NCBI GenBank assembly: GCA_965240325.2
Contig: OZ251223.1
Coordinates: 1,426,001-1,490,000 of the forward strand
Reading direction: 5' to 3'
Source: Rebecca billardiae RCC1528
Taxonomy: Eukaryota > Protista > Haptophyta
Length of the DNA stretch: 64,000 nt
Part shown: piece by piece, positions 41,483 to 48,287 of the stretch
Layout of the letters: every line of letters starts with the position of its first letter
Numbering within the stretch: the first letter of the stretch is position 1
Program-made: the position numbers and the translations under genes
The notes under the pieces: generated by a model
The model's input: only the letters and a program-made list of their open reading frames with translations
Databases searched by the model: none
Told to the model about the DNA's origin: nothing

Positions 41483-42917
41483 CTACTCGTTGAACTCCCA
41501 GACGTTGATCGCGTGGTCCATGCCCGCGCTGAAGAAAGAGTTCCCGGGCCCGAGGCAAAGGGCCCTGCACGGCTGCTGGTGCTTCAGCAGCAGGCCACGT
41601 CTTTCGAACTTGGGCACCTGCGCGGCGCAGCCCGCACACGCGCCGAGGCGGGCGCACGAGGCAGAGCACGCTCAGTCACCAACGTGCCGGCGGAGATGTA
41701 CGCGCGCGAGCGGGGGTGAGAGAGAGCGCAGGCGGACACACCTCCCACAGCTTAATCGCGTTGTCGCTGCACGCAACGACGAGAATGGCGTTCCCGGCGG
41801 CGTCGCTCGCCACCTTGAGCGACGTGACAGCCGAGGGCTTGCGGTCGCGGTCGGTGACGAGGTGGGTGTAGATGACAGCCATGCCCTGCGTGGTGTCGTA
41901 CACTGCGCGTGCGGAGCGCGCGCCCGCCGCGCAGCGCGCGCCAGCCCGCTTCAGATGGAGAGGGGCGGCTGCGGCGCGGCGGGCGAGGGCGCGGCGCGTG
42001 CGCGTGCGCAGCGGCGCACCGAAGACGTTGCCGTCGAGGCCGGCGCTGAAGAGGTACACGTCGAAGAGGGTGAGGCCGATCATGAAGTCGCCGTGCTGCG
42101 TCGGGACGGACGCAACGCCCTGCCCGGTCGACAGGTCCCACTGCTTGATCGTGTTGTCACGCGAGCAGCTGTACAGCATGGTGCCGGCGACGCACAGGTC
42201 GTGGACCGGCGCCGTGTGGCCCTGCAGCACCCCCACCAGCGCAAACTGCCCGCTCGCCGGGTCCTGCTCCGCGCGCGAGCCCGCGCCGCAGCGCAGCCGG
42301 CAGCCAGCGTGAGCGTGCAGGGGCCGCGCCGGCCGGCCTCCAGCGCGACGGCGGCGGCGGCTGCGAGCGCGACGGCCGAGGCGCGGCGCGCGGCGCGCGG
42401 CGCGCACCATCTTCCAGCATCGGATCCCCGCGTCGTGCCCCGCGGTGAAGAGCATGCCGTTGCCCTGCAGGATGGTGTACACGGGGCCGTCGTGGCCGGC
42501 CAGGTCCTGCGTCGCGTTGCTCTCCATGTTCCACACGCGCACGACGTTGGGTGCGCCGGTCTTGCCCATGCCGGCGACGAGCCAGTCGTCCTCGACCATG
42601 AGCGAGTTCACGGGCTGCCCCACCTCGAGCGCGCCCTGCTGCTGGAAGTTGCCCTCAGGCCAGCCCCAGATGCGCACGCTGCCGTCCGACGAGCCCGAGA
42701 AGAGCTGCTGGCGCTTCTGCGAGCATGCTAGGCAGTTGATCGTCTGCCGGTGGCCGGTGAGCGTGCGCAGGTGATTCACCTTCGCGTTCGCCCCCGCGCC
42801 CCGGCCGCCGCCTCGTCCGCTCCCGACGTTGCTCCATCCCCGCCCGCCGCCGCGGGGCACATACGAGCGGCCGCCGCCGCGGAACCCGCCGCCGCGGCCG
42901 CGGCCCCTGTAGTCCAT
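41483..42917 (-). CDS. RGG-box WD40 protein, similar to the WD40 part of plant ZFWD proteins; introns 42264-42407, 41903-42019, 41618-41741
   Basis: MDYRGRGRGGGFRGG; GH...WD repeats; C-terminal YTH...ILVVACSDNAIKLWE|VPKFERRG...GPGNSFF pattern. Confidence 0.88.
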
Positions 42918-43981
42918 GCCGCCGCCACCACCACCGACGGCGAACGGGCTCCGGATGGCCCCCTCAGACGCACACCCGCCGCCGAGCGCCGCGGACCACC
43001 GCTTCCCGCGAGGTCGGCTGGACAGCACGTGGACACGCGCGCCAGCGCTCGGCAGCAATCTGCTCGGCACACCGCTGGAGCCGACGCCACGTCAAACAGT
43101 TCAGGTGTGCACTTGCTGGCACGATGGCGGCCGTGGCGCGCGCAGCAGCAACCAGCAAGCATGAACAAGGATCATGAACAAGGGTGGCCCCTCGAGGCCA
43201 ACCATCGACGCTTGGACGCCTACGGCCGCGCCGAGCGACGACGTCGAGCGGGCGCGCGCGCGCGGCACGACAGGTAGACTCCCGGCGAAGCTTGCTGCGC
43301 GGCAAGCTGTCTGAGGGCGTGCTGCGATGCGCGTGAGGCGGCGGCGCGTGCCTGGGGAGGGGCGGCCGCGCGGGCGAGCACGCGTGGCAGGGCGTCCGCG
43401 TGCTCGGGCCGTCCCGGTCCGTGCCCGGGCGGTCCGTGCCCGACGGACTGCCATCGTCATCTAAGTACTGATGGGGTGTCACACTGTCACTGGGTGGCCA
43501 TTAGTCGTCACGGCGAATCAGTCAGTTATTTTAAATTGTCAATTGCTGATTGATGAAACCGCAGCCTGTGCCTGTGGTGTCAAAGGTCGCATTCCGTTGC
43601 CGCATTGCCGCAGGCGGATGACAATGCTCAGATTGGCGCGCTCGGGACACTGACCGGCGGGCTTTTATTGTTCACCTGCCGGCCAGCAAGTCTGGAAAGT
43701 GGAACTGGAAGTCAGCAACGGCGCGCACTGACGCGGGCGCGATCGCCCGATGGGGCGATGGGCGACGAACGTACACATCTGACTGACATGCTACGCATCA
43801 TGCTTCCACTGCGATGTCAAGCGTGAGGGACGGTTGAATCGGTTAATCGGTAGGTTGATTCCAAACCGTGAAACCGCGCGTCACCCGGGGCAGCCCACAG
43901 CCGTGGCCGCGCGCTCGCCGCCGACGGCGCGGGGCACCGCGCCTCGCGCGACGGCAGCAGCGCACTCGGGCTGGGCGCCCC

Positions 43982-46898
43982 TCACTCGAGCAGCGCGGCG
44001 TGGATGTGCCGCGCGACCGCCTCCGGGTCGTCCCAGTGCGGCAGGCAGCCGACGGCCGGAATCTCGACCAGCTCGCACGAGCCGGGCGGGAGCCGCGCCT
44101 GCAGCAGCTCGGCGTCCACCTTAGGGTGCAGCCTGTCCTCGGCGCCGAGAAGGATGCGTGTGCGCGCGCGCACGCGGCCGAGCGTGCCCACGTGGTCGTC
44201 CGCCGCCATCGCCTCGAGGCTCGCGCGCCACACCGCCTTGGGCACCTTGAGGCTCTCGCGCAGCACGACGGCGCGGAACCACTCGGGCAGCTCGGCCGGG
44301 CGCGCGACGACGCGCGCCTGCCACACCTGCACAAACTGCTCGTCGATCGAAAGCAGCGGGTCTCGGAAGAGAGGGCTGGGGTCGTCGGGGCGCGGCGCGG
44401 GCGGGCACCGCCGAGCGTGAGAGCGCGCGCGCGGGGGAGGAAGGTCGTGTCGCGCCGGGCGCGGGGGCGGGGAGCTGCGCCCCCCCCCCCCCGCGCTCTG
44501 CGCGCGGCATGTGGCACGCGGCCGGCCGGGGCGGGGGCGGGTCGCGTGCTCACACGGCGGCGCGGCGCGGCGCGCGCGCACATGAGCTTCTGCGCGACGT
44601 GGTTCTTCTTGCCGACCGGCGCGCACGCCATGAGGAAGAGCCACTCCACACTGAGCTCGCTCTCCTCCGCGCCCGCGGCCGCGGCGAGCGCGCGCGCCAC
44701 CAGCGCGCCCAACGAATGGCCGACAACGCTCACACTGGTCACGCCCAGCCGCGCCAGAAGTGCGCGCACGTCCGCAGCGAGCGCTGCCGCCGAGTAGAGC
44801 TTCTCGAGGGCGGCGGACTGCGCGCGGAGGGGGGGTGTGCGCGCGGCGGGCGCGGCACGCGGGGCGGGCGGGGGCGCGACGCGCGGGGCAGGGCGCGGGG
44901 CAGGCGCAGCCGAGCCGCGGTCGGTCGAGCGCACGCGCGGCGGGCATGCGCGCTCGGCGCGGCGCGCGCCCGCGCTGCGAGCGCCGCGCGCGCCGCGCGC
45001 GCCGCCCGAAGCGACCGCGCGCGCGCGCGCACGTTGGCAGCGGCCGTGCCGACGCGCTCGGCCGAGTTGTTCGCCGCCGCGGTGCCTGGGTTGAGCCACG
45101 AGTCGCCGAAGCCGCGCAGCGAGACGCTGAGCACGCGCAGCCGAGGGTCGAGGTGAGAGCCGAGCAGCCGCCAGCCGTGGAGCGAGTCAGGCCAGCCGTG
45201 CAGGAGCAGCAGCACGCGGCCGTCGCGCGCGCCCGCGTCGGTGTAGTGCAGCGACGCGCCGTCCGCGAGCGAGAACCGCCCCTCCGCGCCGCGCAGCACC
45301 GGCTCGTCCAGCTCGGCGACCGCTCGGTGGATCGCGTCCCAAAACGCTTGCTCGTAGCCCTGCAGCATGCGCGCCGCGCGCTCAATCTCTGCGCGCGGCA
45401 CGCCGCGCGCGAGCCCCGCCGCGACGAGCGCCACCAGCCGCGCCTCGAACTCCGCGAGCGCCGCCTCGTCCGCGCACGCGTCCAGGAACGCCGTGTGCTC
45501 GGCGCCGAGGCCGAAGTCGCGGCGCAGCGCCGAGGCGAGCGCCGCACACACTGAACCGAACGGGCGCGCGGCGAGCGCGAGCGCGCCCGCGGCCACCGCG
45601 GCGTCCGCGTCCGTCGCCAGGCTCGAGATGTACGCGGCGCGCGCGTGCGCGGCCAGCATGGGCTCGTCTGTGTGCAGCGCAGCACGGCGCGGCGCGGCGC
45701 GGCGCGTGTGTGCGCAGCGGCAAGGGGAGGGAGGGAGAGCGGGGGGGGGGGCGCACACAAATGCAGCGGGGGTTGGCATGGGGTAGGTAGGCGCGTGGGG
45801 TAGGTAGGCGCATGGGGTAGGTAGGCGCGTGGGCGGCGCCTGGGGAGCCTTCCGCCCGCGCGCAGCACGCCCGCACCGCCCCCGCGCGCGCGCCCGCCCG
45901 CGCGCGACACCCACACACACACACACCCGCGCGCGCGCACAGTTCTCGAGCTGCGCCTTCTCGAGGCCGAGCGCGTGAGCGAGCGCCTCGAGCTGCTCGA
46001 GAGCGGCCGCGCGCCGGCCGGCCGCGCCCGCGCCCCACCACCACCCCGAGCCGAGCGGGGGCGCGCTGCGCGAGGCGCGCTGCGCGCGCTGCGGCGCGAT
46101 CGAGCCGCCGAGCACGCCGCCCAGCGCCACCGACTCCAGCCGCGCGGTCCGGTGCTGCTCGAGCACGAAAGTCCGGAAGGAGTCGAGGTGCAGGCGGCCC
46201 GCCGCGGCCGCGGCCGTGATCGGGTGCGAGCGGATCGCTGCCTCCGCGGCGCGCGCGGAGGGGTCCGCGCGGATCTCTTCGAGGAGCGCGCGCGCCGAGG
46301 CGAGCGCCGCGGCCGACGGCGCGCCCACGCGCAGCTCGCCCGACAGGCAGAGCAGCACGCCCGCGCCCACCAGCCACATGGCGCCCAGCGTCAGCACGGC
46401 CATGAGCGCCCAGTACGCAGGCGCGCGCGCGAGGATGATCGCGCCGCACCGGTCGCGCTTGCGCGCGCCGCGGCCGGCCGCGAACGGCGCCGCGATGCAC
46501 CGGTCGCACCGCTCGCCGAGGCAGAGCCGACCGTTCTGCAGCGTGAGCGCGCGCTCGGCCGCGCGCGCGCACTCGTCGAGGGCAAGCCCGCCGCCAAACG
46601 TGCGCACGAGGCACTTGGAGCCGCAGCGCACGCCCGTCTTGTCCACGCGCCAGTGAGACGCCGGGCCGCACTCGCCGAACACCAGGTTGTGGTTCAGGCA
46701 GAGCTGCGTGTCGTTGAGCACGAGCCTGTCGCCCGCCTCCGGCAGCACGCGCGAAAGCACGCTCGATGCCAGCTCCCGAGCCGAGGCCAGCGCGCTGGGC
46801 GGCGGCGGTGCCGCAGCCGGCGCGGCGGCCGAGGCCCCGCGGGCGCCAAGCCCGAGGGCGAAGCACGCGAGCGCGCACGAGGCGGCGAGCGAGGGCAT
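43982..46898 (-). CDS. Multidomain single-pass protein: signal peptide, Cys-rich ricin-B-like domain, TM, TenA/THI-4-like domain, alpha/beta-hydrolase; introns 45668-45940, 44818-45032, 44376-44581
   Basis: IRSHPI..G.L..FRTFVLEQ and ERAARMLQGYEQAFWDAI (TenA); LLLLHGWPDS, SLRGFGDS, VVGHSLG, LLGAEDRL (hydrolase); the three GT-AG junctions give one continuous frame. Confidence 0.8.
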
Positions 46899-47100: not shown

Positions 47101-48287
47101 ATGGCGATGTTGCAGCGACTGGCGCGGTCCGCGTGGCCGCGCGCCCGCGCCGCGGGCGTGGCGGCGGGTGTGGGGCTCGCAGCCTACGGCGCGTCACGAT
47201 CGTTGGGTCTACCATCCCTCTGCGAGCCTGCGGGCGGCGCCGACGGCAAGCCCACGCCCGGGGCGGACAGCCCAGGTGGCGCGGCTGGCGCCTCGCAGGA
47301 CGACGGCATGCTTGGCGGCCTGCAGTCCACGCTCGACGAGCTGAAAGCGTCGGCCCACGCGACGTTCGTCGCGCCCTTCACAGAGCCCACGAGCGACAAG
47401 CTCCTGCCCGACCTGCCCGCGCGCATGCGCGGCAAGGAGCTCCCCACGCTCGTGCTCGCGCTCGACGACGTGCTCGTGCACGCGTCGTGGGACCGGCAGT
47501 ACGGCTGGCGCTTCGCGAAGCGGCCGGGTGTGGACGAGTTCCTGCGCACGGTCGCGCCGTACTACGAGGTCGTCGTGTGGACCGAGCAGTTCTACCTGAT
47601 GGAGCCCGTCATCGTCGCGCTCGACAAGCACCGCGCGGTGCGGCACCGGCTGTACAAGGACGGCATGGTGCTGCGCGGTGGCAAGTACGTCAAGGACCTG
47701 CGCCACCTGAACCGCGCGCTGGGGAAGACGGTGGTGCTGGACTGCCGCGCAGAGAACGGCATCCAGCAGCCCGAGAACTACCTCTTCGTCAAGCCGTTCA
47801 CCGGCGAAGACAGCAGCGCGATGCCGAGCGCCGCTCCGGTCGCGGCCGCCGCGGCCAGCGGCGCAGCGGCGCCAGCCACCAGCACGCCTCCGGACTCGGA
47901 CCTGACGCGCTTCATCCCGGTGCTGCTCCACCTTGCGCGGCATGCGTACGTGCAGGGAGGCGATGTCCGGTCCGCGCCCACCCGCGCCGCACACGCGTCC
48001 CGCGCGCCCCGGCGAGGCGCGCCCCTGCGCCAGCTCACGGCCGCACGCCTCTGCGCGCTGCGGGCTGACCGTGCCCTGGCCCCGACGCACGCGCGCTGCC
48101 CTGCAGGGAGGAGATCACGCGGCTGTCAAAGGCGGGGGATGACGTGCCGGCGACGTTTGCTGCGGAGTTCGGTGCCAGGCCGGGCGCGCCGGCGCGGCGA
48201 ATCGCGCGCCAGCAGCAGCAGGCAAACGCGGCTGCACCGCCAACGGGAACCATCTGGGAGCGGCTGCGCTCTTCACGCGGGAGTTAG
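47101..48287 (+). CDS. TIM50: Mitochondrial inner-membrane translocase subunit TIM50; intron 47970-48106
   Basis: FTEPTSDKLLPD, TLVLALDDVLVHASWDRQYGWRFAKRPGVDEFL, YVKDLRHLNR, QPEN; presequence. Confidence 0.92.

Follow-up and report, generated by a model that had tools for sequence, protein, structure and literature searches.

What kind of protein joins a signal peptide, a cysteine-rich ectodomain, a membrane helix, a TenA-family domain, and an α/β-hydrolase in a single chain, and is it part of vitamin B1 salvage? The question is raised by a gene in a 64,000-nucleotide stretch of the genome of the haptophyte Rebecca billardiae RCC1528 (assembly GCA_965240325.2, contig OZ251223.1, positions 1,426,001 to 1,490,000), which we call the window and whose numbering is used throughout. 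A preliminary description had read the gene as a receptor-like fusion with a ricin-like ectodomain and had offered thiamine-degradate salvage or small-molecule sensing as functions. Our analysis instead favors, with a probability of roughly 0.6, a membrane-anchored serine hydrolase with a TenA-derived accessory domain, restricted to pavlovophyte-like haptophytes; the evidence does not show vitamin B1 salvage by the window protein. Each of the folds is known, and the novelty lies in the combination of signal peptide, Cys-rich ectodomain, transmembrane (TM) helix, TenA-family domain, and serine hydrolase.

Translation of the three minus-strand frames and placement of the splice sites gave a gene running from 46898 to 43982 on the minus strand, with its ATG at 46898-46896, its TGA at 43984-43982, four exons, and a product of 740 amino acids. 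Exon 1 (45941-46898, minus strand, as are all parts of the gene) encodes amino acids 1 to 319 and the first base of codon 320, that is, the signal peptide, the ectodomain, the TM helix, and the N-terminal half of the TenA-like domain. Exon 2 (45033-45667) carries the C-terminal half of this domain to about 45216 (amino acid 470), a conserved linker, and, from about 45212 (HGWPDS motif), the start of the hydrolase. The hydrolase core, including the nucleophile elbow G-H-S-L-G with Ser566 at 44713-44715, is encoded by exon 3 (44582-44817), and the C-terminal third, with Asp690 (44135-44137), His723 (44036-44038), and the stop codon, by exon 4 (43982-44375). Introns 1 (45668-45940, 273 nt), 2 (44818-45032, 215 nt), and 3 (44376-44581, 206 nt) are all of the GT..AG type; each begins with GTGCGCGC and ends with AG. 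Intron 2 is rich in GC repeats and lies in a variable loop, so that its exact ends are less certain. The gene is single copy in the 72-Mb, 41-contig genome.

Relatives were sought in 1.84 billion representative proteins, 5.8 billion clustered proteins, and one Joint Genome Institute (JGI) metagenome contig set. An exhaustive HMMER search of the 1.84 billion representative proteins, with a query that comprised the ectodomain, the TM helix, and the first half of the middle domain, returned five relatives only; a word-based search with the whole protein matched solely the window's own read-through open reading frame (ORF). P0005 (2,289 amino acids) was rejected as a relative, because its 10 weak stretches fell on the TM and low-complexity region and were taken as a compositional match. 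P0002, of 619 amino acids, is 43% identical to the window protein (59% in the region of exon 2), is without intron 1, and carries the middle domain and two-thirds of the hydrolase in one frame, up to an intron matching intron 3. The position of intron 3 is common to P0002 (locus L005) and to P0017, a further partial member, and both ORF calls enter nonhomologous sequence directly after ...NHVAQKL. P0004 and P0006 lie together on one contig.

The most complete ortholog is P0016, a called ORF of 707 amino acids on the intron-free, 2,475-nt JGI contig L092, where 202 nt precede it and 149 nt follow it. An upstream in-frame start, MRTGALVLACML, adds a signal-peptide-like N terminus and brings the full protein to 737 amino acids, so that one frame of L092 holds the ectodomain, the TM helix, the middle domain, and the complete hydrolase. 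Judging from its structure, this contig probably represents a transcript, and the nature of its sample is our inference. The N terminus of P0016 is identical to that of P0003, an annotated product of assembly GCA_026770615.1, which is listed as "Pavlovales sp." (preprint 10.1101/2025.06.04.657860). P0003 itself (222 amino acids; L007, GCA_026770615.1, 6001-8350) appears truncated, with TenA-like homology going on at L007:8204-8350, and the public gene model behind it probably misses most of the gene. Between the window protein and P0016, identity is 64.5% in the hydrolase, 48% in the ectodomain, and 40% in the TenA-like domain; thus, the hydrolase is the best conserved part. The linker from the TenA-like domain to the hydrolase is nearly invariant in four orthologs (LPEPvLRG.eGR). 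By sequence comparison, the four-part architecture is conserved in at least two other organisms and has so far been seen only in pavlovophyte-like haptophyte sequences. A scan of the metagenome contigs with the family motifs HGWPDSL and SLHYTDA retrieved just five distant generic hydrolases, and a literature search for a TenA and α/β-hydrolase fusion found no description, in keeping with the preliminary view that the architecture is undescribed.

These orthologs bear on the possibility that gene modeling produced an artificial fusion, in which the ectodomain and TM helix would belong to one gene and the TenA-like domain and hydrolase to another, or in which the parts would be chance ORFs. GC content is 68% in the whole window and 75 to 80% at the gene; because of this, long ORFs are found in all six frames, and a lone ORF is therefore little evidence. 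Moreover, the transcript structure of the window gene is taken from its orthologs and not from its own RNA, and P0001, a prokaryote-style ORF call of the window gene of 719 amino acids, runs through intron 1. On the other hand, exons 2, 3, and 4 each have a frame of their own and yet are consecutive on the Pfam α/β-hydrolase profiles, exon 2 covering Abhydrolase_1 positions 2-41, exon 3 positions 49-89, and exon 4 Abhydrolase_6 positions 110-216, which chance ORFs in DNA of 75 to 80% GC would not give. Introns 2 and 3 are thus directly evidenced, because the hydrolase profile continues only with the frame changes.

Intron 1 amounts to exactly 91 codons, which are missing from P0002 and P0016. 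P0001 reads through it because the intron is in frame and free of stops, and exon 1 matches P0001:1-319 with 100% identity. Within the intron, a 17-nt unit, TGGGGTAGGTAGGCGCG, is repeated 3.2 times in tandem at 45779-45833, and there is an (AC)10 run at 45907-45926; the read-through has a predicted local distance difference test (pLDDT) score of 29 to 39 in the AlphaFold2 (AF2) model. Its retention would leave the protein untruncated, with an added low-complexity loop. P0016 and P0002 cross junction 1 without a break (...QLE[NS]-Y-EPM...; QLES-Y-EPM in P0002), and P0016 crosses junction 3 as KL-L-PLF, compared to KL-I-PLF in the window protein (...AQKL-[IL]-PLF...). Junction 2 falls in the variable loop, where donor and acceptor are fixed by frame only and P0016 is compatible with them. 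Furthermore, the ectodomain, the TM helix, and the N-terminal half of the TenA-like domain form one uninterrupted exon; the boundary between the TenA-like domain and the hydrolase, at about amino acid 470, lies inside exon 2, as had been proposed; P0016 has all parts on one intron-free contig; the parts of P0002 stay in a single frame until the conserved intron 3; and each part is 40 to 65% identical between species. The four-exon gene is real, its parts stand in this order on one gene, and the artefact can hardly be credited. The earlier claim that one frame emerges after three GT-AG splices thus holds.

We next consider the middle domain, which spans about amino acids 200 to 470. Its N-terminal half (45941-46301, about amino acids 200 to 319) contains an HPI motif and a low-complexity loop at amino acids 257 to 290. 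The profile PF03070 (TENA_THI-4/PQQC; gathering cutoff, 22 bits) matched P0001:195-562 with 24.1 bits (E = 3.5e-5) in two stretches flanking the intron 1 read-through. For P0002 the same profile gave 49.6 bits (E = 5.6e-13), covering positions 2-207 of its 210, and for P0016 it gave 12.2 bits, below the 22-bit cutoff. ESM Atlas feature matches to the N-terminal half all came from TENA_THI-4/Haem_oxygenas_2 families, those to the C-terminal half included no usable match, and a sequence search of the window domain against PDB sequences returned nothing usable. The AF2 model of the domain has pLDDT values above 90 in the conserved helices and low values in the read-through and one low-complexity loop. 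VIA-align superposed it on CADD, UndA, PqqC, and TenA with Z scores of 16 to 20 over 200 to 237 residues (most rows, 200 to 225); the best match was CADD (Z = 20.1; root mean square deviation, 2.6 Å; 208 residues), with TenA homologs at Z = 16 to 18.7 and heme oxygenases at about 16. Foldseek gave a probability of 1.00 against both TenA homologs and CADD. The profile scores and these models show that the middle domain is a member of the TENA_THI-4 family with a heme-oxygenase-like fold, and the fold match on which the preliminary description had staked its TenA assignment was therefore found.

Among known systems, TenA/thiaminase II (B. subtilis 1yaf/1tyh; archaeal 2gm8, 1udd, and 1rtw) has the same PF03070 family and heme-oxygenase-like all-helical fold, with Foldseek TM-scores, normalized to the target, of 0.74 to 0.78 in the best rows. 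The likeness extends to an N-terminal H-P-x motif and a C-terminal Y-E-x-x-F-W motif holding the equivalents of Glu205, Phe208, and Trp209; the window domain differs in its fusion with a hydrolase and a TM anchor. CADD (CT610, 1rcw/8va9), which stands with the di-metal oxidases UndA, BesC, and HrmI, is the best PDB match by both profile and structure and differs in its metal site. A profile of the prokaryotic subfamily described below matched CADD with E = 1.4e-11, P. horikoshii TenA with 8e-10, and B. subtilis TenA with 6e-8. By profile and modeled fold, then, the TenA-like domain appears as close to CADD as to TenA.

In sequence, the middle domain comes closest to prokaryotic proteins of about 220 amino acids that stand alone, in contrast to the fused algal versions. 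A word-based search with the P0002 domain found P0007 to P0015 (219 to 227 amino acids, all PF03070, at most 39% identity over 93% of the domain), and a motif scan of one genome per species placed the subfamily in at least 221 prokaryotic species, mostly Actinomycetota, with others in Chloroflexota, Methylomirabilota, Nitrospinota, Latescibacterota, Endozoicomonas, and a few archaea. Its motif is [LI]Q[AGQ]YEL[SML]FW (Q-x-Y-E-L-x-F-W-D). At the position of TenA Asp44 the subfamily has Gln; the equivalents of Glu205, Phe208, and Trp209 are conserved, as is Tyr112 in the prokaryotes. A Cys eight residues past the TenA Cys135 position, on the same helix, is kept in 63 of 72 prokaryotic members, while another 8 of the 72, with Asp and Cys, group apart in a canonical-looking clade. 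In a quick, unrooted maximum-likelihood tree, the three algal domains grouped together as a clade (SH-aLRT, 100) within the 67-member Gln/Asn/Cys subfamily; the position of this clade within the subfamily is an unresolved polytomy, and the algal branches are long. The preliminary description had taken the domain for an actinobacterial or archaeal type acquired by horizontal gene transfer. The nearest relatives are indeed prokaryotic and stand alone, and the tree does not settle a donor; these comparisons make it plausible that the domain came from a prokaryote and was then fused, with no donor that can be named.

To see what the domain retains of its relatives' active sites, we compared pocket positions. 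At the TenA Cys135 position (prokaryotic N138 in P0007 numbering), the window protein has Ala348, P0002 has Thr, P0016 has Ser, and 64 of 72 prokaryotic members have Asn, in agreement with the earlier observation that the active-site Cys of TenA_C is absent. The other TenA_C residues are also altered, with Asp44 replaced by Gln and Tyr112 by Arg329 in the window protein; Glu205 is kept as Glu425. TenA_E is defined by a Glu at or adjoining the TenA_C cysteine position (definition quoted in PMC5635689), and the window protein reads L-A-A-R there, with no Glu at or next to the Cys135 position. Further prokaryotic pocket residues vary among the three algal proteins: Y115, which is Tyr in 71 of 72 members, is Arg in the window protein, Tyr in P0002, and Leu in P0016; W142 is Phe, Phe, and Leu, respectively; and F211-W212 is FW, FW, and SC. 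E82 is Arg in the window protein. The algal versions have thus lost the near-invariant Y115, N138, and W142, and the window protein also E82, compared to the prokaryotic subfamily. The His of the HP motif, the subfamily Cys (C360), and the Glu205 equivalent (E425) are kept in all three. NCBIfam thiaminase II (TIGR04306, salvage_TenA equivalog) did not match P0001:195-562, and P0007, the closest stand-alone relative, scored 14.1 bits against its 130-bit cutoff.

CADD was the top profile and fold match, and a CADD-like di-metal oxidase was therefore a candidate; it was rejected on the metal-ligand columns. Using what we take to be the CADD ligands (CT610 E81, H88, E142, H174, D178, and H181), a numbering checked against the 1rcw chain in the alignment, we found a conserved counterpart in the subfamily for one of the six, Glu81, which is Arg in the window protein. 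In the columns of His88, Glu142, His174, Asp178, and His181 the subfamily has Ala, Phe, Phe, Pro, and Phe, respectively, and the NCBIfam CADD score for the subfamily was 16 bits against a cutoff of 200 bits. A di-metal site is not expected in the window protein or the subfamily on these alignments. Altogether, the residues point to a TenA-like domain without the catalytic signatures of TenA_C, TenA_E, and CADD.

These results weigh on the proposal of a membrane-tethered unit for thiamine-degradate salvage, in which the hydrolase would deformylate formylaminomethylpyrimidine (FAMP), replacing bacterial YlmB, and the TenA-like domain would convert aminomethylpyrimidine (AmMP) to hydroxymethylpyrimidine (HMP) beside an importer. 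TenA-family domains are fused to enzymes of adjoining thiamin steps in yeast THI20 and plant TH2, and the middle domain does belong to TENA_THI-4 and keeps the Glu205, Phe208, and Trp209 equivalents, P0002 also that of Tyr112. In addition, HMP or AmMP supports the growth of haptophytes, Pavlova among them (PMC5635689), marine phytoplankton are without a clear YlmB (PMC10470507), and the gene for the stand-alone relative P0009 lies beside genes for a HAD hydrolase, an M20 amidohydrolase, and an ABC importer whose binding protein is of the Bmp type, an arrangement that recalls the bacterial layout for FAMP salvage. Set against these points are the Ala, without Glu, at the Cys135 position, which fits neither TenA class; the changes at Asp44 and Tyr112; the thiaminase II profile results; and the variation of the pocket among the three orthologs.

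Moreover, the genome already holds a canonical TenA_C (G000:C22:185683-186270, L003; Q-D and T-P-C motifs, 122.8 bits) and a TenA_E (G000:C8:1907550-1908176, L004; V-A-E-W, 79.4 bits), a pair that agrees with the report for Pavlovales in PMC5635689. The salvage proposal is speculative because these two genes lie elsewhere in the genome. Nor is the P0009 neighborhood conserved: when neighbors were clustered over 80 prokaryotic loci, no family occurred in more than 10 of the 80, and there was no conserved gene neighborhood. A conserved two-gene module of TenA and hydrolase would predict a related hydrolase beside the prokaryotic relatives, which is not so; blastp of the window hydrolase against all ORFs of the 80 loci (L012-L091) gave no match. 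P0010 has an unrelated α/β-hydrolase two genes away; this case and that of P0009 are anecdotes, because neither recurs among the 80 loci. Thus, the salvage unit first suggested for this gene now looks unlikely. As a separate observation, the TenA_C of L003 lies inside an open frame of 1,159 amino acids, so that this gene, too, may encode a fusion.

The hydrolase, at about amino acids 472 to 740, was matched by Pfam (PF00561/PF12697) with 28.9 bits in exon 2 and 30.6 bits (E = 3.4e-7) in exon 3, each over the 25.8-bit cutoff; in P0016 the match reached 63.4 bits and covered positions 2-245 of the 245 in the profile. Exons 3 and 4 are 64 to 66% identical to P0016. Alignment positions assign the catalytic roles to Ser566 in G-H-S-L-G, Asp690 in E-D-R-L, and His723 in P-H-W-D, all kept in P0016; P0002 and P0017 have the Ser motif as well. 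The α/β-hydrolase, which had been called complete, thus appears to have a complete Ser-Asp-His triad. Among HGxP hydrolases (Cif-like enzymes, dehalogenases, PHB depolymerase, and PcaD/BioH-like esterases) it has the same Abhydrolase_1/Abhydrolase_6 match and differs by a long variable loop after the G-F-G-D-S strand and by its fusion to the TenA-like domain and the membrane anchor. Its H-G-W-P N-terminal oxyanion region resembles those of Cif-like epoxide hydrolases and haloalkane dehalogenases, and the C-terminal third of the hydrolase, encoded by exon 4, has weak NCBIfam PcaD-like matches and is nearest to PcaD-type enol-lactonases; no NCBIfam equivalog cutoff was approached by the hydrolase. 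An epoxide hydrolase or haloalkane dehalogenase was rejected, since the elbow residue is Ser and not Asp in all orthologs and the likeness is confined to the H-G-W-P region.

At the N-terminal side, the predicted signal peptide occupies about amino acids 1 to 22 (46833-46898), with a hydrophobic core at 1 to 19 (Kyte-Doolittle hydropathy, 1.67), and a putative single TM helix lies at about 162 to 185 (46344-46415), where the value over 167 to 185, 2.23, is the highest in the protein; both elements had been noticed before and are borne out by these values. The orthologs P0002 and L092 (from its upstream start) also have hydrophobic N termini, and a hydrophobic segment is present at the TM position in P0002, P0016, P0003, and P0004. 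Between the two lies the Cys-rich, beta-rich ectodomain (about amino acids 55 to 155; 46434-46736), with eight Cys invariant in four orthologs and an N-x-T sequon at N62; the sequon is common to three of the four orthologous ectodomains, and Cys residues are few after the TM helix. The eight Cys and the sequon would fit a luminal or extracellular ectodomain. Bipartite plastid targeting, suggested by an Ala/Pro-rich stretch after the signal peptide, was dismissed: the stretch is unconserved in the orthologs, and there is no aromatic residue at the predicted cleavage site.

An AF2 model of the ectodomain, built from a shallow alignment of four sequences, was all-beta with 11 strands (pLDDT, 62; predicted TM-score, 0.59), which accords with the Cys-rich beta segment described earlier. 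Almost all of its top 50 Foldseek matches were beta-trefoils, with weak scores (E = 0.25 to 3.5; TM-score, 0.27 to 0.39), and VIA-align, which is independent of Foldseek, also returned almost exclusively beta-trefoils, weakly (Z = 2.0 to 2.9); neither set of scores is significant. The matched beta-trefoils were B chains of type II ribosome-inactivating proteins, CBM13, lectin domains of polypeptide N-acetylgalactosaminyltransferases (GalNAc-T), and fibroblast growth factors. The sequence-level searches were negative: the four orthologous ectodomains had no Pfam match at E ≤ 1; neither a single sequence nor a profile matched PDB sequences; the exhaustive HMMER search yielded no ectodomain relatives apart from the orthologs; hhalign of the ectodomain alignment with a Ricin_B profile of 20 actinobacterial domains gave a probability of 0.3% (E = 0.21); and the three QxW repeats of Ricin B (PF00652) were not found in the ectodomain, where one x-W repeat is visible. 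Like R-type (ricin B/CBM13) lectins, the ectodomain is all-beta and Cys-rich and has local C-L-x(5-9)-L-x-x-x-C...W patterns; it differs in having about 100 amino acids compared to the usual 125 to 140 for three repeats. Of the ricin-like ectodomain first proposed, what stands is a weak beta-trefoil resemblance of the model, and the profile evidence for it does not; "ricin-like" is a weak structural lead and not a finding, and a reduced binding module of the beta-trefoil type is one weakly supported possibility for the ectodomain.

Such a module invites a reading of the protein as a transmembrane receptor or sensor, whose ectodomain would bind a glycan or small ligand and switch the hydrolase through the TM helix, for example by dimerization, with the TenA-like domain as a coupling or oligomerization module. 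TenA-family proteins are oligomeric. The type I topology, the conserved disulfide-rich ectodomain, the weak but consistent beta-trefoil lectin matches from two independent aligners, and the highly conserved linker between the TenA-like domain and hydrolase are in line with such a receptor. Nonetheless, ligand binding is a proposal only, the ectodomain model reaches a pLDDT of just 62, the Ricin_B comparison was negative, the protein has no known signaling output domain, and the ectodomain may serve sorting or anchoring only. We consider a receptor role improbable. Both this role and salvage are possible readings whose positive evidence consists of family membership and topology.

The membrane-anchored serine hydrolase with a TenA-derived accessory domain is therefore the explanation we prefer. 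With a type I single-pass topology, the ectodomain would face the endoplasmic reticulum lumen or the cell exterior, and both later folds would be cytosolic. The hydrolase would be the catalytic engine, of the serine esterase or amidase type, acting at the membrane surface. The TenA-like domain, probably derived from a metal-free prokaryotic subfamily of the TenA/PqqC family, would more likely be a ligand-binding, regulatory, or scaffolding module for the hydrolase than a thiaminase II; an accessory role is likelier because the ancestral pocket residues are no longer constant in the algal fusions. Several points count against this explanation. C360 and E425 are retained, and the TenA-like domain could still be catalytic. 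The PF03070 score in the window is barely over the cutoff and was measured on the read-through with intron 1. Splicing and expression of the window copy are deduced from its orthologs, and the signal peptide and topology are predictions from hydropathy and residue content. Finally, no conserved operon partner or characterized close homolog constrains the substrate.

The boldest proposal combines several of the elements above. It holds that the protein is a new transmembrane enzyme, horizontally acquired and specific to pavlovophytes, whose lectin-like ectodomain senses or captures a vitamin-related or glycan ligand while the cytosolic TenA-derived domain and hydrolase process a B1-type pyrimidine degradate in two coupled steps. 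We regard it as quite unlikely.

For the serine hydrolase with its accessory domain, the consequences are of two kinds. The domain is a third TenA-family lineage in haptophytes, of a prokaryotic type, beside TenA_C and TenA_E, which matters wherever counts of "TenA" genes mark B1 pyrimidine salvage in marine plankton; judged by its residues, the window paralog ought not to be counted as a thiaminase II. The finding also points to a large, uncharacterized prokaryotic TenA/PqqC subfamily, the one found in at least 221 species. If it is true that the hydrolase and the TenA-like domain share one substrate, the fusion would be a clue to the chemistry of this subfamily.

Two further features lie near the gene. 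About 200 bp upstream, in head-to-head orientation, lies a gene for an NIF/FCP1-type phosphatase (47101-48000, plus strand; PF03031, E = 1.4e-30), which is probably TIM50-like with an N-terminal presequence; the head-to-head neighbor is kept at the orthologous loci L005 (P0002) and L006, which speaks for the gene model. On the other side, a long ORF at 41676-43070 on the minus strand has WD40-like repeat motifs (e.g., GH...WD) broken by intron-like low-complexity stretches.

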